NCBI GenBank assembly: GCA_024704765.1
Contig: JAKMXF010000023.1
Span: 24,883-88,882, forward strand
Reading direction: 5' to 3'
Length of the DNA stretch: 64,000 nucleotides
Origin: Oopsacas minuta
Lineage: Eukaryota; Animalia; Porifera
Part shown: one piece after another, positions 1,879-49,805 of the stretch
How positions within the stretch are numbered: position 1 is the first letter of the stretch
Layout of the letters: each line of letters begins with the position of its first letter
The notes under the pieces: generated by a model
Told to the model about the DNA's origin: nothing
Databases searched by the model: none
What the model saw: only the letters and a program-made list of their open reading frames with translations
Position numbers and translations under genes: made by a program

Positions 1879-4800
1879 TCAGGTGAATTTAGTTTGTATC
1901 TGACAGATCTGAGTATTCAGATTCAATATAGAATCTCTCAAACAAGGAATTTGAGAATCTACCAATTCTGTCATTTGTGAGTTTGTTGGAGATATTTGAA
2001 CTGTTATTATGAAAGATAGAGTGTCAAGATGGTAGTATTGTCTGTTCAGCATGTCCTGGTGAGTAATATACTTTGGCTGTCCTAACCCGTTATTCCTAGT
2101 GTATTTAGGTCTTTGAAAGAGTTCAGAATTAATTTCCATTTTCTCCTTACTCACTTCAATACGCTTGACATAGTTTGAATTCTTGAATAGATTATTCTTC
2201 AAACTGAAAGTAGCTTTGTACATTAATGGCCATTTAATCCTATCATCCCATTCCCCCTGCATTACGTGTATATACACTCCTATATACTTTATACTAGTAC
2301 TCACTGTATACCAGTTTATACGAGCCTGTAGTTTGTAAAGACCTACGTAGAATGGATCGCTATAACTCTCCTCTCTTGAAATCATCCTCTTTTTCACTCC
2401 ATTTACTCTCCAGTATAAATTCTTAATAGATGGAGTCTTCAAGAAAGAGAGAGCTGTTGTTAAATCTTGTTTCATCTTCAAATTCTCTCTTTCTAGATTA
2501 TCAATTTTATCAGTTTGTATTTCCTGTATCTTTTCCATTTCTTCTATTCTAACTCTGAAATATTCTTGAGTTAACCTAGAATGAATGTGAGAATATTCCC
2601 TCTCGTGGTGTTCCATTTCTCTCCTCTCTAACCTAACCTCACATCCATACCGCATGTATATACATACTACTTCCTGTAGCATACATTCAGTAGCAAGATG
2701 CTTTGATATATCCCGTCTTATAATATATCCATCTGGTTGTGTGTCACAAGCATTAGGACACTCTACATGACAGTCATCGCACTCCTCAATGTGCATATCC
2801 ATATCTATAGCTCTGATCTCTATGTAACAATACTTACATGTTACTAGTCTGATAGGACATGTATGTAGCAGATGATCTTGTAGATATCTCCTCTCTACTC
2901 TGTAACCTCCTGTGTGTGTTCCCTCGCTATTATCTATATCATCACAGTTGTTAGGACATGGTATATGGAGTAGAGGACATTCTATTATGTGTTCTACCAG
3001 CTGCAGGAGTATGCCTGTCCAGGTACAGGCATCTACTGGACATATGACCTATACAATAAGAGGGTAATAAGTAGTGCAACTGGGATCATTTCAACCAAAT
3101 TAATAAACACTGATTAGACTTTGGAATCAAGAGGTTAAATTCATTTGAAATTGTTGCCAAAAAGTGTAAAGTATGATTAACATACTTCGCTTCCAATCGT
3201 GGGATTTCGCTGGTAGATCGTCCATATTTATAAACCTGACCACATAGCTTTTAAAATAATACAGCAGATGTGTAGTCGTGTTAAAAAGCTAATGCAAATG
3301 ATGGCATATAGTTATAAACCTGACAGCAGTGGATTATACAGGAATTTTTGAGCCTGTACTTTTTTCTTACGGGTACCCACGATAATATATTAACCTCTAC
3401 TACGAATTTGAGTCTCACTATCAGAATTTCGTGACCTTCGTGGCTGCTTAACTTGCACTTTTAGGTGCCCGCCAAACATCTAGAGATAATAAACCCTTGC
3501 CTGAAGGGTAACGGAAGTTTCCTCGCTGGAAATTTAGTATTCGAGTATCCTTTTTAGAGAGCAGATATGCATATAATTAATGTAGTATAGTTTGGTATGG
3601 AATCTGTAGAGAATTAAAACTCAAAATGATAAGCACTGCCACTTAGGGCTTATATCCCGGTTCACATAATCTGGAACAAGCAATTGTATACGCTCATCTC
3701 GTTCTTCTGACTTTTTATTGCATGCTATCATACTACAGTGCAACCTCTATAAGTGGGGTCTCGATAAATGAGGAACCTCTATAAGCGGGGAGTGGGGTAT
3801 GGGGGATACTATAGAGATAATTATGCTTCACAATTGAAATTACTTCTAAAAATTGGGAAATCTACGGGAATTTTTCTAATTTAGTGCTGAATTTGGAAAG
3901 AACACTTATTTCTAGTTATAGCTATGATGAATTCAAATATTTGGGTTTTTGTGAAGAAAATTTCTTACAAATGTGTATATTCAACCAACAACCTTAGGGC
4001 ACATTACAATAATCAAATATCATTGAAATATCAGTAGTTAGAGGGAGTGGTATACATATTAAACTCAAAGTCTCTGGTTAAGGATATTTACGTATAAATG
4101 GGGAATAGGCTCTCGTGTCAAGAATGTAAATAGCTATGTGTTTAACAAGGAAGTAAATAGAATTCAATGAAAGTAGACTAATTATAACGAACATGCTGAA
4201 TCCGATTTTCACACTTTTGCATTAATCATATGTAAATTTATTGTTGTTTATGATTATAAAGTAAACAAATAGTTGAAATCTTAAAATATACGTAGAGACT
4301 TGCTCTAAACGGCTACAAAGGGTGTTGATCTTACAAAATACTTCAATAATATATATGCCATATAAGTACATTAGTGAATTACATTGTTCTAAATATATCT
4401 ATATTATAATACTCAAAGGGGCCATCAATTTGGAGAATAATGGATATCTCGAGGCGTAATGCGCCGAGTTCATCGCGAAGCGACGAGCCAAAGGCTCGTC
4501 TATATTATTAAATCTCAATGATTGTCTATTTATCCGTTGTCAAGGAAGGGATTGACGGTATGCAATGTTGAAATTGTCACATAACTATGTATTTATCGTG
4601 TTTATTAAGGAAGTAAATAGAATTCAATGAAACTTCACTAAATATATGGAACATGCTCAATCCGATTTTCACACTTTTGGCTTATTGTTGTTTTTATGAA
4701 TATAAAGTAAACAAATTAGCCAATTTATGGTTTACCACTTTTTTGTGTAAGTAATATTATACATAATTGGAATCATGACTAAGATATAAGTGGGCGAAAC

Positions 4801-17569: not shown

Positions 17570-17570
17570 N

Positions 17571-38949: not shown

Positions 38950-39516
38950 TATAATGAAGCTAACAATAATTTGGGATTTGTAATTTAGAAAGGAACGAAC
39001 ACGTGTACAAGAAGAAAGTTTAATTAAATGTTTCCTGCTCGGGCGCTCATTTAGCCTTAGAAATCACCGAATATTGTAGAATGACGCAGGCGAGACACAC
39101 CGGTCTGGCTAATTTCCTGTAAAATATCCATAGGATTATTATAATTGTGAGTATCAAGTTCTGCTATACCTATTTTGAATTACTTGTAACATTAGAGTAA
39201 AAATAAATAGACCAGTTGGTATTTAATCACTAGGTGTTTACGTATAGAAATGTGCCCCAATGTCCTACACATGACCAGTAATATTATCGGAGGTACGACT
39301 CTGCCGGACCACGAGCCCGTAACTACACTATTAGCCACTGAAAGATATCTCAGTATCACATTCAATTACTATCTGGAAATTTGTGAGTACATATTAATCA
39401 TATGATATATTGAAAATAAAATATATGATTATACGTAACACTAAACACAATTATTACAAGAGAAGATATAGTTCTGTTCTAAAAGAGTAAATAACAAATA
39501 TTATGAAAATATACAT

Positions 39517-41248
39517 TTATAACGCTGGTAACAATTCCATTTTAATTTGAAGAGTTATGCTGTCTTTTTTACAATATTTAGCTTCTAATATTTCAGTTTT
39601 TTAAATGAATAAAATTCCCATATCGCTATCATTTCTCAGCTCAGTAGGTCTCTCGAAGCTACTAGGATATTTCTTTAAATATTCCTTAGTTACTTTCAGA
39701 TTGTGTTTATAATTATTATTACTGTTAATGCGATTAAGTAGAATTAACGTACATTTGTATCTGATAGGCCAGTGTAGTTTATAATCATAAGCGCCTTTCA
39801 TAATAAAAATGGAAACATATACTGTATTTTCATTCCACCGATTCCATTGAATTTTCCCCTGACACTTGTATAAACCTACATAGAATGGATCACTGTAAAT
39901 ATCCTCTTGGTTTTCTATCTTCTGTTCAACACCTTTAATCTTCCATTCCAATTGTCCTGGAGGTAGAGATAGAGGTGCATAAGAATAGAGTATTTCCTTA
40001 ATTGATTTCAGTTCTGAATCCTTTTTAGTATTATCTTGCTTTTGTTTCTGATTGAATCTAATTACCAGCAGTATAGCTATACTCATGATAACTAGTGCAA
40101 AAAATATCCATATAGTCCTGCTTCTAGTAGTATCAATTCCATTCAAAGAGCTTGTTGTTCCAAATTCCTTCTTATCCATTTGGTTACTCAGCTGTTCGTT
40201 GCCAGTTCTCAGCTGATTGTTCACGCACTAATTTCTGGTGACTTATCGTATTCTGAGTTATATGTGTTCCAGGTCTTTTATCAGTATTCCAATTGTGTCA
40301 CAAACAACTTCCTTGTAAGGATATGAATAGACTGTTTATGCGTTTGTATAGACTGTATGACTGACTGTATAGACTGTTCGAGTGTCTGTACAGATAGTTC
40401 GTTCTGGTGTATCCTGTCTCTCTCCATAAGTAGGAGAGGGATTAGAATAGCCATACCCGTGATAACTAATGCTAACAAAATCCATATACTCCTGTTAGTA
40501 TTCGTATTACTCCTAAGCAAATTGGTTTGTATGTTTCTTGTTTCAAATTCGTTCTTATTCATTTTGTCACTCAGCTGTTTGTTCTCAGTTCTCAGCTGTT
40601 CGTTACCAATTCTCAGCTGATTCAATTCATGTACCAATAATTCCTGGTGACTAATCATATTCTGAGTTATATGTGTGTTCAGGTCCTTTCTTGCTATTTC
40701 AATTGTCTCACAACCTACTTCCTTATAAGGACATGTAACAACACCATCTGGATTGTCCAGACAAATTCTAGCGTGTTCGTTTGTTCTGTTAGCTTGTACT
40801 TCTTTTCTACAGTACTCGCACCTTTGATTACGGAAGGGACACTTTTTCTGGTGGTCCAATGTGTCACATTTTTGTAACACTTCTCCACATCCTTTCTGAC
40901 ATTCTATTTTCACTTTAACACAACCACTTATGTGTTCCACAATATTATCCAGCTTTCCTAACCAATCACAACCTCGTATTGATAGAGGACATCTGCATTT
41001 CAGTTCCCTTACAAACCCGTCTACTCTCCCATCAACTTCCCCGCCTTTACCCTATGTACAATTTGTACAGAATGTCTTGCCTTCAGACATTTGTGGTTTA
41101 ATGCTAATTCCATCACATTTTGAGCATATTAATAATTTCTCAATATTCTCAGGGACCTGTTCCTTGAGTAGGTCTGTTCGATACCCCTCATACTCACGTA
41201 GATGAGAGCAGTTATAGAGTCTGGTGTTACAGGTTCTCTCTCTGCCAT
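39517..41248 (-). pseudogene. Transmembrane TRAF-like gene, left copy (RING-like, Zn fingers, 2 TM-containing modules, MATH), disabled
   Basis: Collinear with the right copy and with the TRAF MATH at 1879-2420. Lesions: 13-bp deletion near 41185, TAG at 41054-41052, two 1-bp deletions near 40325 and 40270, in-frame TAA at 39603-39601. The frame resumes KTEILEAKYCKKDSITLQI to the stop at 39517. Confidence 0.85.
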
Positions 41249-42770
41249 GTACCCACTTGTTTACTTGTTAGTTAGTTATTACTTATCAGATAATTCAGTT
41301 CTTATGAGCATACGTTATAGTGTATCTGATATTTGAGAAGTTTATTAATAGAATAACTGTGCAGTAATTCAATAGCTATTACATAGGAGAGTAATTTCAA
41401 TAGTCTTATGAATTTATGACAGCTTGTGTACATGAAATGCTCAGCAAAGGTGTGATATATGATTAAACTCATGAAAAACATAATTATGTGTATATTCCTA
41501 GCATGCATTCTCCACCTATCAAACGGTGTTATAATATAAGTACAGTAATCATAATATACGATTGTCTACTGAAACTTCAAAATGTCCTATTTGAGATAGT
41601 TCAACTCGTCAGCTGCATTTTCGCTTTTATGAGCTAATCAATTAGAATTATAGTTTTTCGAGTTATTTACTAAATCGTATCACACAATGACAAAATCTAA
41701 ACAAATCATAAATTCATAAGTAACTATTGAAATGAATATCCGTATAATGAGTGTTGGATGCTCTTTAGGAACGGGAGGAGACCTGTTATACCCATTTCTA
41801 TAATAGTAGTAGTAAACACAACTTCCCTAGCACGAACTAATGGAGGGCATTTGATTAGGAACTATCCCCCAAGCATGAAGATAGGGATTCATATACTATA
41901 CTTATGGATTAGATCTCTGAACACGACACCTCTGGTTCTATCAACAAATATGTAACACCTGTATAGTGTATATAATTACTTGTATATATGAAGAAATATT
42001 ATATATCAAAGAATATCCTTACTGTTGTTTATTTTCTTATTCATACCGTAGAACAATCCCATATATTATTATGTACTCACTTCTTCCTTAATATCAAGTG
42101 ATCTGAGGATATAATACATTTGTAATTTTAACGTTACTGAGATATATTAGGTAATATGGATGACACATGTTTTGTCAATATCCATTTATTACTCCATAGT
42201 CACTAAAGTTATTATCAAATCACCCCAACCAATATGCACTACATACCAAACTTCTCATACCCTTGTAATATATTTTCTTACGATATTATTGTGTCATCTT
42301 TGATAATAACCAAAATATGAGTAAATTCACAATAGAGTCACACGGGTTAGAGCTATCGTATCAAATTGTATTACAAGGGAATGGGAAGTTTGGTATTTAG
42401 TGCAGATTGGCTGGAGTGATTTGATAATAACTCTAGTGACTATCGAGTAATAAATGGATTGAACAAATATGTGTCATTCATGGTATCCAACATAACTAAG
42501 TGCCGTGACAACTTTATCATTACAAAATTTCTATATTTAGTATGAAACATCTATAAATTACCTGCTGTTAATTTTGGAATCGGAGTCACAATAGTTTTCG
42601 ATTAACACAGCTTGAAATGGCAAATGTTTGACAACATTTTCCCTATTTGGAAATCCGATGACGTCATTTCGGGCTGACATAAGTTTGATGATATAGCTAG
42701 TATCAATTATTAACTTTCAATAATACATGAGCCAAGGGCTCGTCGCTTCGCGATTAACTCGGTACATTGC
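39654..42770. repeat. Left arm of inverted segmental duplication (A 39654-42091, B 42086-42770)
   Basis: Reverse-complement match to 45595-48443 (A) and 48445-49129 (B), including near-identical promoter and non-coding sequence. Confidence 0.92.
42150..42487. mobile_element. Palindromic MITE with long (about 110 bp) imperfect TIRs; second copy near 48730-49065
   Basis: 42163-42268 is the reverse complement of 42369-42476 with scattered mismatches. Confidence 0.6.
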
Positions 42771-42890
42771 ACCTCGAGATATCCATTATTCTTCAAATTG
42801 ACGGCCCTTTTGAGTATTATAATATATATATTTAGAACAATGTAATTCACTAATATACGTATATGGCATATATTATTGAATAATTGTCTC
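42728..42890 (-). mobile_element. Helitron-like family A 3-prime fragment
   Basis: Reverse complement matches 4340-4500, ending GCGAAGCGACGAGCC..GGCTC. Confidence 0.65.
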
Positions 42891-43838
42891 ATATATTCTA
42901 ATATATCCATGAGAATTGTAACGAATCAATTCAAAATCTCTACTCATTCCTAACCCGAGTTCTTCAAAAATCATTTGATGAGATAAATTAAAATTTTTGT
43001 AATATCGTATTCGTGAACTTCCGAGATACCAAACTCCAAACTTTACAAATATCTTATTTGAGAAATCTCTCCCAATCAGCAAATTACCAAAAGGGTCGAA
43101 ACAAAGAGACAAATTCATATTGGCTGGAATGAATTGTTTGTTAAAGATCACACTTTGAATAAGCTCTCTATTAGCTAATGAATAGCGAAGAATGGTAACT
43201 TTTGATCTGCAATTTTGACTTGGACTATCTTCAGTACTAACAACAACCATCTTGTCTTCTTGGATTTGGATGGCAATAGGATGATACCCTGGTGTCTGAT
43301 ATGCACTGAATTCGCCAATATACTGCAAATCATGTGAGTATACATATATCTGAGGCTTATTAGAATAATACAGATAAATATTATCATCTTTATCACAGTC
43401 CATAGAATATCCCGATCCCTTTCCTGATAGACTTATATGCTTCACATTGTAATCATTGGATCGAGCTAGCATGTCTACTCTATAATTGTCATACACTACA
43501 AGAAACATATCATTTGATAGAAATTGTATCCTAGGATAGTAATGAGATATAGTAGAAGGAATAGAATAACGAGTTATAAGCTCTCCGTCGACAGTGTATA
43601 TAGTGTACATGATTACCTGAGGAAGATAGCAATATTCGCGAGAGCAAATAGCAATTAGGGATTCTGTTGAATGAAGGCAAAATGCTACAATATTAGTTGA
43701 AATACGAAATTCCCTAATCGTGCTATTGGTAAAATCATAAATTTCTTTGCTTTCATTAATAGGTTTATACTTCTTAGTTTTCTGTCTCTTAGCAGTTTCC
43801 TCTTCGGCTGTTTTGTCAATTGATCCACGTTTACTCAT
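42873..43838 (-). CDS. Uncharacterised 321-aa protein, probable degenerate NHL-type beta-propeller with basic N-terminus
   Basis: Long ATG-initiated ORF. DCDKDDNIYLYYSNKPQIYVYS and LCFDPFGNLLIG resemble NHL blades; KRQKTKKYK is NLS-like. Confidence 0.6.
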   Translation of the reverse strand: MSKRGSIDKTAEEETAKRQKTKKYKPINESKEIYDFTNSTIREFRISTNIVAFCLHSTESLIAICSREYCYLPQVIMYTIYTVDGELITRYSIPSTISHYYPRIQFLSNDMFLVVYDNYRVDMLARSNDYNVKHISLSGKGSGYSMDCDKDDNIYLYYSNKPQIYVYSHDLQYIGEFSAYQTPGYHPIAIQIQEDKMVVVSTEDSPSQNCRSKVTILRYSLANRELIQSVIFNKQFIPANMNLSLCFDPFGNLLIGRDFSNKIFVKFGVWYLGSSRIRYYKNFNLSHQMIFEELGLGMSRDFELIRYNSHGYIRIYETIIQ

Positions 43839-44255
43839 TTGAGTGTTATTATGTTATGTATAGTAATAGCTAACTTATTAATACAAGATTCGGTAAATAC
43901 AATCTGTGCCGACAGCGGTCTATACAGGCAGCCCTCGCCGTTCACGGGGGTTACGTTCTTGAGAAATGTTGCGAACCGCAAGACGTTAGTTCAAATGATA
44001 ATAGTGGTGTTCCTAAAATAACAAACAATAATGCTAGAAAATATGATTGGAATGTGTAATAATTATCAGTTTTAACAAGATTAATAGTATTCTAATATTA
44101 CTTGTCATTCGACAAAATTCTGACTATTTGAATAATAGAATATTTACTTGTTTCCCTCTCCTGACTCTCGTAGCAGAGTATAGCTGGAATTCTATTGTAT
44201 GTAATCTAGCTTACTGGCTACAAATTCAATATCCTTTAATTGAATGTATTACATA

Positions 44256-45568
44256 CCAGGTTGTCCAAAAAGTTCGCGGAATTGCAAATATATTTTATTT
44301 ATCAATGATTCATACTCAACTAATTATTGTTCATAGTTTTCAATAAATTCACCTTTAACCTCGATACATTTCTTCCATTTTGATGGGAGTTTATTTATTC
44401 CTGTGGTGAAGGATTTTTCAGGGGTACCTTGAAACCATGAATTTACAGCGGACCTAAGGTGCTCAAAATCGCTGAAACGTTTACCTCTAAGTGGTCTTTT
44501 CATTTCTGAAAAAAGCCAGTAGTCGCTGGGCGCTAGATCTGGGCTGTATGGGGGATGTGGGAGTAATTCGAATCCTAAATGTTGAATTTCATCCAAAGTT
44601 CGCCTGCTGGTATGGGCTGGAGCATTATCATGCTGAAGCAAAACATGAGAACTCAACTTGCCACGCCTCTTAGACTTGATAGCTTCGCGCAATTTCTTCA
44701 GAACTTGAACATAGTATTCAGTATTTATTGTTACTTTGTTAGGTAACCAATCAATAATGATTATTCCCTTTGTGTCCCAAAAAACTGTTGCCATCCGTTT
44801 ACCTGCTGATGCGACGGCTCTGGGTCTAATAGGAGTTGATTCATGCCTACGCTTCCATTGACTCGTCTGTAAACTTGTCTTAGGCTCATAAAAATGTAAC
44901 CAAGTCTCGTCCCCTGTGACTAAACGATCAAAGAACCTTGGCTCCTTCTTAGAAATCCGTAAGAGCTGGCGACAAACACGAACCCTTTCAATCCTTTGAG
45001 ATTCAGATAACAATTTGGGAACCCAACGAGAAAGAACTCTCGACATTCCCAATTGTTCAGTTAGAATCTTATCAAGTATTGATTTTGACATCCCCAATTC
45101 TTCCTCTAACTGCCGCAGAGTCACACGTCTATCTTTATCAAGAATGTTTGATATAATTTTGTTATTTTCTTGGTTGGAACATGTTTTCGGACGACCAGGT
45201 CTTGGGTTATCATCAACAGTTGAATGCCCATCATTAAATCTGTCAATCCATTTGTAAACCATCAATTTACCAGGGCATCTACTACCATAAACCTTTTCCA
45301 TCTCGTAGAGAATCTCGCTTCCACTTTTATTTTGTTTCCAGAGAAACCAAATGATATATCGTTTCCCATCTTCTGAGTTTTCCATTTTAGAAAAAAATAC
45401 GACAATCGTAAATGATGCTAAAGAATACCTAAACCAAACTTTTTGATTACAAAAGTTAGGATAATTGAGATAAGGAATATTAGAATTAATCGAAACAATA
45501 GGGTAATTGATAGAGTGTATATAACACAAACTAGGGATAAAATTCCGCGAACTTTTTGGACAACCTAG
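44256..45568 (-). mobile_element. Full-length mariner transposon (1313 bp)
   Basis: 28-bp TIRs C(C/T)AGGTTGTCCAAAAAGTTCGCGGAATT with one mismatch, TA TSD on both sides, intact transposase ORF. Confidence 0.96.
44324..45385 (-). CDS. Mariner transposase, DD34D, 353 aa (from MENSEDG)
   Basis: Two HTH regions, WVPKLL, DETW, HDNA, YSPDLAPSD with 34 residues between the last two Asp. No stops. Confidence 0.95.
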   Translation of the reverse strand: MENSEDGKRYIIWFLWKQNKSGSEILYEMEKVYGSRCPGKLMVYKWIDRFNDGHSTVDDNPRPGRPKTCSNQENNKIISNILDKDRRVTLRQLEEELGMSKSILDKILTEQLGMSRVLSRWVPKLLSESQRIERVRVCRQLLRISKKEPRFFDRLVTGDETWLHFYEPKTSLQTSQWKRRHESTPIRPRAVASAGKRMATVFWDTKGIIIIDWLPNKVTINTEYYVQVLKKLREAIKSKRRGKLSSHVLLQHDNAPAHTSRRTLDEIQHLGFELLPHPPYSPDLAPSDYWLFSEMKRPLRGKRFSDFEHLRSAVNSWFQGTPEKSFTTGINKLPSKWKKCIEVKGEFIENYEQ

Positions 45569-46438
45569 TACATTTTGAAATAATTGTATTGTATTTAAGG
45601 AAGAAGTGAGTACATAATAATGTATGGGATTGTTCTACGGTATGAAATAAGGAAACAAACAACAGTAAGGATATTCTTTGATATATAATATTTCTTCATA
45701 TATACAAGTAATTATATACACTATACAGGTGTTACATATTTGTTGATAGAACCAGAGGTGTCGTGTTCAGAGATCTAATCCATAAGTATGGTATATGAAT
45801 CCCTATCTTCATGCTTGGGGGATAGTTCCTAATCAAATGCCCTCCATTAGTTCGTGCTAGGGAAGTTGTGTTTACTGCTACTATTATAGAAATGGGTATA
45901 ACAGGTCTCCTCCCGTTCCTAAAGAGCATCCAACACTCATTATACGGATATTCATTTCAATAGTTTGTTATGAATTTATGATTTGTTTAGATTTTGTCAT
46001 TGTGTGATACGATTTAGTAAATAACTCGAAAAACTATAATTCTAATTGATTAGCTCATAAAAGCGAAAATGCAGCTGACGAGTTGAACTATCTCAAATAG
46101 GACATTTTGAAGTTTCAGTAGACAATCGTATATTATGATTACTGTACTTATATTATAACACCTTTTGATAGGTGGAGAATGCATGCTAGGAATATACACA
46201 TAATTATGTTTTTCATGAGTTTAATCATATATCACACCTTTGCTGAGCATTTCATGTACACAAGCTGTCATAAATTCATAAGACTATTGAATTTACTCTC
46301 CTATGTAATAGCTATTGAATTACTGCACAGTTATTCTATTAATAAACTTCTCAAATATCAGATACACTATAACATATGCTCATAAGAACTGAATTATCTG
46401 ATAAGTAATAACTAACTAACAAGTAAACAAGTGGGTAC

Positions 46439-48443
46439 ATGGCAGAGAGAGAACTTGTAACACCAGACTCTATAACTACTCTCATCTACGTGAGTAAGAG
46501 GGGAGAGACAGGAGGGTATCGAACAGACCTACTCAAGGAACAGGTCCCTGAGAATATTAAGAAATTATTAATATGCTCAAAATGTGATGGAATTAGCATT
46601 AAACCACAAATGTCTGAAGGCAAGACATTCTGTACAAATTGTACATAGGGTAAAGGCGGGGAAGTTGATGGGAGAGTAGACGGGTTTGTAAGGGAACTGA
46701 AATGCAGATGTCCTCTATCAATACGAGGTTGTGATTGGTTAGGAAAGCTGGATAATATTGAGGAACACATGAATGGTTGTGTTAAAGTGAGAATAAAATG
46801 TCAGAAAGGATGTGGAGAAGTGTTACAAAAATGTGACACATTGGACCACCAGAAAAAGTGTCCCTTCCGAAATCAAAGGTGCGAGTACTGTAGAAAAGAA
46901 GTACAAGCTAACAGAACAAACGAACACGCTAGAATTTGTCTGGACAATCCAGATGGTGTTGTTACATGTCCTTATAAGGAAGTAGGTTGTGAGACAATTG
47001 AAATAGCAAGAAAGGACCTGAATAGACATATAACTCAGAATATGATTAGTCACCAGGAATTATTGGTACATGAATTGAATCAGCTGAGAATTGGTAACGA
47101 ACAGCTGAGAACTGAGAACAAACAGCTGAGTGACAAAATGAATAAGAACGAATTTGAAACAAGAAGCAAACAAACCAATTTGTATAGAAGTGATACAAAT
47201 ACTAACAGGAGGATATGGATTTTGTTAGCACTAGTTATCACGGGTATGGCTATTCTAATCCCTCTCCTACTTATGGAGAGAGACAGGATAAAACAGAATG
47301 AATTATCTATACAGACACACGAACAGTCTATACAGTCACATGAACAGTCTATACAGTCAACAGTACAGTCTATACAGTCACATGAACAGTCTATACAGTC
47401 ACATGAACAGTCTATACAGTCAACAGTACAGTCTATACAGTCACATGAACAGTCTATACAGTCACATGAACAGTCTATACAGTCAACAGTACAGTCTATA
47501 CAGTCAACAGTACAGTCTATACAGTCACATGAACAGTCTATACAGTCACATGAACAGTCTATACAGTCACATGAACAGTCTATACAGTCACATGAACAGT
47601 CTATACAGGCAGATGAACAGTCTATACAGTCAAATGAACAGTCTATACAGTCAAATGAACAGTCTATTACATATCCTTACAAGGAAGTTGGTTGTGACAC
47701 AATTGGAATACTGAGAAAAGACATGGAAACATATATAACTCAGAATACGAAAAGTCACCAGAAGTTAATGCGTGAATTCAATCAGCTGAGAACTGGCAAC
47801 GAACAGCTGAGAAGTGAGAACAAAGAGCTGAGTGACAAAATGAATAAGAACGAATTTGAAACAAGAAACATACAAACCAATTTGCTTAGGAGTAATACGA
47901 ATACTAACAGGAGTATATGGATTTTGTTAGCACTAGTTATCACGGGTATGGCTATTCTAATCCCTCTCCTACTTATGGAGAGAGACAGGATAAAACAGAA
48001 TCAACTATCTATACAGACACTCGAACAGTCTATAAAGTCAACCATACAGTCTATACAGACACATAAACAGTCTATTACATATCCTTACAAGGAAGTTGTT
48101 TGTGACACAATTGGAATACTGAGAAAAGACCTGGAAACACATATACCTCAGAATACGATAAGTCGCCAGAAGTTAACGCGTGAATTCAATCAGCTGAGAA
48201 CTGGAATGAACAGCTGAGAAGTGAGAACATACAGCTGAGTAACTCTTTGAATGGAATTCATACTACTAGAAGTGAGACTACATGGATATTATTAGCACTA
48301 GTTATCATGTGTATAACTGCGCTGCTGAGTAAGGCTATAGGAATGTATTTGGGTCATACTTAATCACATTAACAGTAATGATAAGTATCAATACACTAAT
48401 AAAGTAACTAAGGAATATTTGGAGAAATATCCCAATAGCTTCG
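46439..48443 (+). pseudogene. Transmembrane TRAF-like gene, right copy (in-frame TAG at 46646-46648; 482-aa ORF 46769-48217; MATH mostly deleted and truncated)
   Basis: RING-like CSKC..CTNC, TRAF Zn fingers, three tandem modules with IWILLALVITGMAILIPLLL-type helices, frameshift near 48205, residual MATH KVTKEYLEKYPNSF fused to a repeat. Confidence 0.8.
47315..47668 (+). repeat. Coding 21-bp minisatellite, 17 units encoding SHEQSIQ/STVQSIQ heptads
   Basis: Units TCACATGAACAGTCTATACAG and TCAACAGTACAGTCTATACAG counted directly. Confidence 0.95.
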
Positions 48444-49805
48444 CGCAATGCACCGAGTTAATCGCGAAGCGACGAGCCTTTGGCTCATGTATTATTGAAA
48501 GTTAATAATTGATACTAGCTATATCATCAAACTTATGTCAGCCCGAAATGACGTCATCGGATTTCCAAATAGGGAAAATGTTGTCAAACATTTGCCATTT
48601 CAAGCTGTGTTAATCGAAAACTATTGTGACTCCGATTCCAAAATTAACAACAGGTAATTTATAGATGTTTCATACTAAATATAGAAATTTTGTAATGATA
48701 AAGTTGTCACGGCACTTAGTTATGTTAGATACCATGAATGACACATATTTGTTCAATCCATTTATTACTCGATAGTCACTAGAGTTATTATCAAATCACT
48801 CCAGCCAATCTGCACTAAATACCAAACTTCCCATTCCCTTGTAATACAATTTGATACGATAGCTCTAACCCGTGTGACTCTATTGTGAATTTACTCATAT
48901 TTTGGTTATTATCAAAGATGACACAATAATATCGTAAGAAAATATATTACAAGGGTATGAGAAGTTTGGTATGTAGAACATATTGGTTGGGGTGATTTGA
49001 TAATAACTTTAGTGACTATGGAGTAATAAATGGATATTGACAAAACATGTGTCATCCATATTACCTAATATATCTCAGTAACGTTAAAATTACAAATGTA
49101 TTATATCCTCAGATCACTTGATATTAAGGTTCTAAATTCTTAACTCAATTCTATATGAGTAATTCAATTACGGTAACTAGTTGATCATATTTTCACACCT
49201 TTTTGCTTATATTAATGATGCTAGAGATTTCATTTCAACTGTTAGCCAGGGTAATCGAGTATGAAGATTCCATTTTGTAATTTTCAAATCTATATCTACA
49301 TATTTATCATTACAGGTATCCTTCGCCGTTCCCCGGGGTTACGTTCCAGTAAATTTGAACGACAAATTCGGGAAAGGCGAGACTATAGCTATACGAGGAT
49401 AGTGGAGTTACGTTCCTAGATTTCAGGAGTACACACAAACAGTGCAAATAAACACAATCAGAATCAATAAAATAATAGAAAATAGTTATGAGTTAAATTT
49501 TTTTGTTTCTTTACAAATTGAATTGGAAAATCAAGACTTCTAATACTTGGCCGTAGACAAAGCATAGTAGATCCTGTTTCTTGAAATATACCTTCTTATT
49601 CTTAATAAAATAGAAATCTATCTCCCCTGTAAGTATATGTCTTGTGCATATGTGTATTGAATTCTGAACAATACACTAGCTAATAATGTGGATTGTCCCA
49701 ATACTCATTGCAACAAGTAACAAACTCGTGATCAAGATTGACTCTAACAGGCATACAATAATATATAAATAAAAAACTATAATATTGTGTACATTATCTG
49801 ACTTA

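Follow-up and report, generated by a model that had tools for sequence, protein, structure and literature searches.

A window of 64,000 nucleotides from the sponge Oopsacas minuta (assembly GCA_024704765.1, contig JAKMXF010000023.1, positions 24,883 to 88,882 of the forward strand) carries two copies of a TRAF-like pseudogene, here called block A, each joined to a copy of a second unit, block B, which is made up of a fragment of a foldback repeat and the head of a short, abundant repeat, R2. The two copies are inverted with respect to one another and their blocks stand in swapped order, i.e. the right copy is a circularly permuted version of the left. The structure is best explained as a genuine local segmental duplication produced by DNA repair, not by transposition. 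It was checked by scanning for repeats and by a BLAST of 36-53 kb against itself, the gene was searched one open reading frame (ORF) at a time, and the assembly with which sequences were compared comprises 61 Mb in 365 pieces, with a G+C content of 36%. The features and their positions are given in Table 1.

Table 1. Features of the duplicated locus and its surroundings, in window coordinates, with transposase matches elsewhere in the genome given by contig
Feature	Position	Strand	Evidence or remark
A_L, TRAF-like pseudogene at the left (zf-TRAF, coiled coil, membrane helix and MATH), together with ~840 bp upstream of it	39470..42085	-	Pfam matches, paralogues
CCTTAA, single, donor A/B border	42086..42091	+	Junction strings
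B_L, internal fragment of ~1-kb foldback repeat (TE1)	42088..42738	+	Family continues past both ends elsewhere
R2, abundant short repeat, head hairpin CGAGCC-TTT-GGCTCG	42729..42886	+	Copies across 42770 elsewhere
321-amino-acid (aa) ORF in spacer, intronless, small host gene family	42873..43838	-	No Pfam match
Young mariner	44256..45568	-	Transposase_1, DDE_3 and HTH_48 matches; TA target duplications 44254-55 and 45569-70
TTAAGG, left end of right copy	45595..45600	+	Junction strings
A_R, right gene copy	45601..48443	+	MATH exon is the last ~107 bp only, cut at 48443
J, joint of MATH fragment and R2 head	48443..48445	.	+ strand AGCTTCG-C-GCAATGC; unique in assembly
B_R, copy of R2 head and TE1 fragment	48445..49129	-	6 mismatches in 685 bp; terminal TTAAGG 49124-49129
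Satellite monomer, ~135-bp family	49181..49310	+	51 unique bp beyond right copy
Another repeat after the satellite monomer	49311-49524
piggyBac-type transposase match	G000:C222:1199209-1200264
piggyBac-type transposase match	G000:C332:278094-279149
piggyBac-type transposase match	G000:C338:55989-57038
piggyBac-type transposase match	G000:C348:56372-57544

The block A gene lies on the minus strand at the left and on the plus strand at the right, and has Pfam matches to zf-TRAF and MATH, a coiled-coil array of 21-bp units and a membrane helix. The duplicated portion of its left copy is 39654-42085. In the self-BLAST, left 40345-42097 and right 47355-45589 form an inverted match with 96.8% identity across 1770 aligned bases, and the block B segments, left 42086-42770 and right 49129-48445, are likewise inverted and 99.1% identical. 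On the plus strand the left side reads A and then B. A plain inverted copy would be expected to read rcB-rcA (rc, reverse complement); the right copy reads rcA-rcB, and its reverse complement is B (49129-48445) followed by A (48443-45589). The first-pass annotation had described this order, A-B at the left and B-A in the reverse-complemented right copy, together with a B of 685 bp in both arms, and the inverted matches of the two blocks bear it out on both counts. This anatomy is read directly from the letters. A search of the 61-Mb assembly returned only these two 99% copies of B.

What marks the ends of the copy? A hexamer stands once at the donor border, as CCTTAA, and at both ends of the right copy, as TTAAGG, which agrees with what had been noted at first pass. 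The left junction reads ...CTTCTTCC TTAA TATCAAG..., the junction at the A end of the right copy ...CTTCTTCC TTAA ATACAAT... and that at the B end ...TTTAGAACC TTAA TATCAAG... Because the adjoining bases differ, the string common to all three sites is exactly CCTTAA, an identity of six bases. One other CCTTAA occurs within the donor segment, at 39996, and there are 26 in the window when both strands are counted. The donor hexamer stands between the arms of a 6-bp inverted repeat, TCACTT...AAGTGA. Beyond the copy lie its two flanks, Y (45571-45594) and X (49130 onward).

The remaining junction, J, is where the right copy of the gene meets the head of R2. In the sense of the gene it reads ...AATAGCTTCG-C-GCAATGCACCGAG..., while at the matching points the left MATH exon reads ...AGCTTCG-AGAGACC... 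and the repeat ...CTCGAGGT-GCAATG... On the other strand the parents are CATTGC-ACCTCGAG (repeat) and TCTCTCGAAGC (MATH) and the joint is CATTGC-G-CGAAGC. The parents have 0-2 bases in common at the joint, and one base comes from neither of them. No second copy of J was found in a search of the whole assembly. The first-pass annotation had postulated microhomology at both kinds of junction, and this holds for CCTTAA but not for J, where CTCGA was the sequence named: the CTCGA of the repeat lies 3-7 bases outside the breakpoint and is not present in the copy, and a joint mediated by it would give CATTGCACCTCGAAGC, whereas the actual joint is CATTGCGCGAAGC. With 0-2 common bases and one extra base, J looks like a product of end joining, for which such scars are typical, and not of microhomology-mediated joining. 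That J links a MATH exon and a repeat which are both truncated, also proposed earlier, is correct, as both families continue past the cut points elsewhere. The MATH exon family reaches ~39470-39511 in more than 40 paralogues, and the right copy is therefore cut inside the exon.

The foldback family to which most of B belongs has at least 40 loci at 68-80% identity; its members are ~1 kb long, self-inverted and nearly complete palindromes. The fragment in the window (42088-42738, with its copy at 48479-49127) is predicted to form a long hairpin of -174 kcal/mol (RNA parameters). In both window copies, the match to a profile built from ten foldback copies begins at TTAATATC, and it extends into neither flank. 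R2 is far more common, with more than 500 first-look candidates of 83-91% identity that span 42770. The duplication includes only the R2 head, ~42 bp (42729-42770), and the left R2 is unbroken to ~42886. Because R2 and the MATH exon are contiguous at the left and cut at the right, the left copy is the parent, in the assembled order, which is how the first-pass annotation had taken it.

Could block B have arrived on its own, for instance as a TTAA-inserting miniature inverted repeat transposable element? This was considered and rejected. Both copies of B have the same truncation points, with the same 42 bp of R2 attached, and because of these shared truncation points they are not independent insertions; foldback family members other than these two are below 80% identity. 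Nor does the position of B next to X appear to be the original context of the foldback, as the profile does not run past the TTAA into X. A shuffle test of continuity between the foldback and X gave a z of only ~2-3, a weak hint at most, and satellite-like sequence is present within 1.5 kb of 3 of the 10 foldback loci, at low identity and at no fixed position. A further R2 copy is found in the window at 4342-4454. Another R2 copy is located ~230 bp upstream of the closest paralogue of the block A gene, on C222, in the opposite orientation.

Both copies of block A carry a premature TAG where five paralogues have GAG, 69 codons along the frame (46646-46648 in the right copy). The left copy alone has a derived 13-bp frameshift deletion (left 41183) in the same coding stretch as the TAG. 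The right copy has lost most of the MATH domain, and its first coding stretch is otherwise intact save for the common TAG. As judged from the reading frames, block A is a pseudogene, and because the TAG is common to both copies, the parent was already dead before the duplication.

The right copy of A is a mosaic. Left 42091-40606 is 98-99% identical to its right counterpart, and the remainder of A is patchy, with 82-99% per 100 bases. Compared with the left copy, the right one has a deletion of ~305 bp, internal duplications of 702 bp and 408 bp, and an expanded 21-bp (heptad) array at 47243-47751, with ~24 units in place of 3-4; the translated repeats, of the EQSIQS[HT] type, follow the membrane helix. 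The last 107 bases before the joint are ~80% identical to the left copy and 91-93% to other paralogues, and in several 120-bp windows, among them the 340 bp that precede the joint, other paralogues match at least as well as A_L does. The caution expressed at first pass, that 48240-48443 is more diverged than the rest, was thus justified. The substitutions in B (6 in 685) and those in the 5' 1.5 kb of A (22 in 1486, plus two indels of 13 bp and 1 bp) indicate a similar divergence, and together these parts form one contiguous 2.2-kb donor block (40606-42770), whose two parts sit at opposite extremes of the right copy.

How did the mosaic 3' third originate? A recent template switch to other paralogues was considered as its source, but no extant donor exceeds 93% identity. 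Mismatches bunched near junctions, as a mark of error-prone copying, were also looked for; no bunching is seen in B or in the 5' 1.5 kb of A. Under any single-event model, gene conversion and repeat slippage would be needed afterwards to account for the 3' third. The other possibility is an older event, after which conversion between the arms has maintained the likeness of the long, clean blocks of homology.

Paralogues of the MATH exon number more than 40, at 80-88% identity, and several are in tandem arrays with a period of ~3 kb. TRAF/MATH tandem arrays of this period are found at G000:C19:35549-45216 and C66:2113-5671 (L036). At the unit border in C66, the end of the MATH exon (~39455) directly abuts upstream DNA (~41979), ~100 bp short of the CCTTAA border. 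At G000:C166:350292-366957 (L053, L054), two copies of a TRAF/MATH paralogue form a palindrome with 8.1-kb arms of 99.96% identity around a spacer of 464 bp; either the palindrome is a fold-back duplication of very recent date or the assembly has created it.

How might one arrive at a copy that is inverted, permuted and bounded by the same hexamer on both sides? The explanation preferred, tentatively, is copying from a single donor CCTTAA by the two ends of one break. A double-strand break would have occurred at a TTAAGG site 1.5-2.8 kb from the donor. Its two 3' ends would bear complementary copies of the 6-mer, and both might anneal to the one donor CCTTAA, on opposite strands. The top-strand end, ...TTAAGG-3', would pair with the plus-strand CCTTAA of the donor and copy leftward, which would yield Y-TTAAGG followed by the gene in sense; the bottom-strand end, ...CCTTAA-3', would pair with the other strand of the donor site and copy rightward through B and the R2 head. 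If the extended ends were then linked by non-homologous end joining (NHEJ), a blunt-like joint such as that at 48443-48445 would be left. A single event could in this way account for the inversion, for the exchanged order of the blocks and for a copy bounded on either side by one and the same 6-mer, with neither a circle nor a coincidence. The donor site is at the foot of the strongly hairpin-forming foldback repeat, and a foldback hairpin there could expose single strands. Donor and target are 2.8 kb apart, a distance that includes the 1.3 kb of a young mariner and comes to ~1.5 kb without it; local repair predicts closeness, and the distance fits break-templated copying.

Several points weigh against this explanation. 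The break and the priming are supplied by reasoning, not read from the sequence. Priming from only 4-6 bases for a synthesis of 2.4 kb is at the long end of documented templated insertions. The 3' third, patchy (82-99%) and in some windows nearer to other paralogues, needs extra events. The orientation between the two B copies is given by the assembly only. Finally, a circle opened at CCTTAA would give the same sequence equally well.

The circle was the proposal of the first-pass annotation, in which it was closed at CTCGA, reopened at CCTTAA and integrated in inverted orientation 2.8 kb away. The anatomy, the inversion and the distance hold; the closure at CTCGA does not, and a circle is not forced by the data. 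In revised form, a ~3.1-kb circle of left 39654-42770 would have been end-joined at J and integrated in Campbell fashion through the 6-base identity. This is possible, if somewhat unlikely. A circle would be consistent with the swapped order, the one novel fusion joint and an opening site that the donor has once and the copy has at both ends, and the scars are like those reported for circle-type duplications in cattle and human (PMC7450558), where the joint has either one inserted base or 0-2 bases of microhomology and the insertion shows microhomology too. In addition, J is unique and the assembly has no tandem array of the unit; an A-B-A-B array elsewhere, which the first-pass annotation had named as another possible source of the B-A order, was looked for and not found, as the 61-Mb assembly returned only the two 99% B copies and the one joint. 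However, for a circle that diffuses freely the chance of coming down less than 3 kb from its source in 61 Mb is about 1 in 10,000, an argument that a circle made and re-used inside one repair event would escape. Besides the missing CTCGA, identity is uneven along the copy, and one clean 3.1-kb circle of the present left sequence cannot explain everything. The assembly contains neither a second insertion nor, with 3 mismatches allowed, an empty target site Y-TTAAGG-X, and nothing in the sequence separates a circle from the break-repair route. In a third route, rather unlikely, a tandem duplication would have taken up an inverted templated insertion, and 42771-48444 would later have been flipped. 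The ancestral order would have been gene - CCTTAA - Y ... ORF321 ... R2 - B (inverted) - TTAAGG - X; a fork would switch at CCTTAA to the inverted B, copy B and the R2 head, and jump back 3.1 kb into the MATH exon, in all two template switches. The product would be two gene copies in direct tandem, with B where they join, and the flip would have come about by recombination of the inverted B copies or by the choice of the assembler. When 42771-48444 (5.7 kb) is flipped in silico every junction is kept, with direct A copies 3.5 kb apart and inverted B copies, and the two B copies make up an inverted repeat of 685 bp with 99% identity. The route requires just two new junctions, and the gene family is one that forms tandem arrays with a ~3-kb period, as on C19 and C66. 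The assembly is probably of the hybrid de Bruijn type (PMC10280926), and the orientation of inverted repeats that are 99% identical is difficult to settle in such assemblies. An extra flip is needed, though, and there is no positive sign of a flipped ancestor: the foldback profile does not run from B into X, no paralogue was found with upstream DNA resembling Y, and J is devoid of the microhomology typical of template switching. The three routes, a circle, one break, and a tandem duplication with a flip, would yield exactly the same letters.

Might the structure be a product of the assembly, a haplotype mis-strung by path errors through near-identical repeats? The published O. minuta assembly was made with SPAdes in hybrid mode from Illumina and corrected PacBio reads, with subsequent scaffolding and gap filling (PMC10280926), a combination of short and long reads that calls for caution. 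The same gene family also has the 8.1-kb palindrome of 99.96% identity and 464-bp spacer, a form that assemblers can create. An artefact is nevertheless unlikely, with only a slight chance of being the answer. The junctions have 0-6 bases in common with their partners, far below k-mer size, and each must exist in the reads; path errors would not invent the ~1% difference between the arms, the large indels, the 21-bp array expansion or the unique joint; and no gap is near the region, the only N being at 17570. It is very improbable that two unrelated events were involved, with A_R an old inverted paralogue whose 5' half was homogenised by conversion and the 685-bp copy of B inserted separately into the MATH exon. 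The identity mosaic is what would suggest it, with 98-99% in the 5' half and a 3' third that is no nearer to A_L than other paralogues are. But the end of the A homology and the start of B would have to coincide by chance on one set of 6 bases, for which the odds are ~1 in 1000 if the donor region is a few kb long, and B and the 5' half of A are one contiguous donor block of equal divergence. Just as improbable is that a TTAA-specific transposase acting in trans cut at TTAA sites, or integrated a circle of host DNA that mimicked abutted transposon ends. Four piggyBac-type transposase matches are present in the genome; they have no internal stops, their open frames are 490-539 aa and two have identical scores, and TTAA-specific transposases may thus be active there. 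If such an enzyme were responsible, it would have mobilised a segment of host gene lacking its own transposon.

A comparison with known systems puts the duplication in context. The nearest parallels are the cattle KIT translocations for colour-sidedness and human circle-type segmental duplications (cSDPs), of which, as far as the account in Chicote et al. [quoted passage not shown] The sponge case and these have in common the change from A-B to B-A between parent and copy, a copy number of two, one fusion joint where microhomology is minimal or absent or a single base is inserted, an insertion point with microhomology, and breakpoints within interspersed repeats. The differences are those of scale and setting: 3.1-3.5 kb here and tens of kb to Mb there; 2.8 kb from the source on the same contig, in contrast to a distant locus or another chromosome. 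The sponge copy is in addition inverted, has a pseudogene as cargo, has flippable arms that permit a tandem reading, and is known from sequence alone. Tilapia vasa is reportedly another case of circle-mediated duplication. The type of duplication is thus already known from cattle, tilapia and human, and the present case is smaller, local, inverted and pseudogene-bearing.

Templated or replicative insertions on the kilobase scale with microhomology have also been described (PMC5120786, on complex chromosomal insertions, and PMC11724301, on insertions at breaks that are templated or inverted). With FoSTeS (fork stalling with template switching)/MMBIR and synthesis-dependent end joining, of which these are examples, the sponge locus shares a nearby template, an inverted insert and the absence of transposon ends; it likewise has 6-base microhomology at two junctions and a third that is end-joined (0-2 bases). 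The break-templated insertions documented in one of these papers are mostly tens of bp long, whereas 0.7 kb and 2.4 kb would have been copied here. Inverted paralogues homogenised by conversion resemble the locus in their inverted arms, with one long segment of ~99% and an older remainder; they differ in that the arms here are permuted, with B at opposite ends of the gene, which conversion cannot produce. As to the geometry in which both ends of a break use the same donor site, we know of no explicit description.

Transposition of the piggyBac type was considered in view of the TTAA on both sides of the copy and at the donor border, and was rejected. There are no terminal inverted repeats beyond the 6-bp subterminal match, which is also present at 1.4% of the TTAA sites in the window; only two copies of the unit exist in the genome; the cargo is a host gene and repeat fragments; and the TTAA flanks are not specific, since the common string is 6 bases and not 4. 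The last ~90 bp of the DNA upstream of the gene (41997-42085) were also considered as a transposon end and rejected, as no further copies occur in the genome; one paralogue locus has a match of 63-65% with the same TTAA end, which is weak and not collinear.

What does the locus signify? A circular permutation in finished sequence is not proof of a circular intermediate, as two ordinary repair routes would give the same letters; a circular intermediate is compatible with the sequence but not required by it. The duplicated gene was dead already, and no new function is at stake. Should a circle have been involved, this would be an example from an early-branching animal of a route known from cattle, fish and human, and an unusually small, clean one, where every junction can be read to the base and is convenient for PCR testing. 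The locus also extends the view of this sponge genome as one where genes of the TRAF/MATH type are copied, inverted and converted at high rates.

Distant paralogues of the 321-aa spacer ORF are present at three loci, with ~67% identity at the DNA level; one locus is on this contig, shortly upstream of the window. The spacer holds a 170-bp repeat as well. The mariner is separated from the right copy by 24 unique bp. The mariner family numbers at least 26 copies, which are 92-99% identical, the transposase frame of the window copy is open, and the element has probably been active recently. A mariner copy is also found ~630 bp from a foldback-repeat copy on C325. The ~135-bp satellite beyond the right copy forms tandem arrays elsewhere, e.g. 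at C144:528077-528625 and C350:113876-114647.

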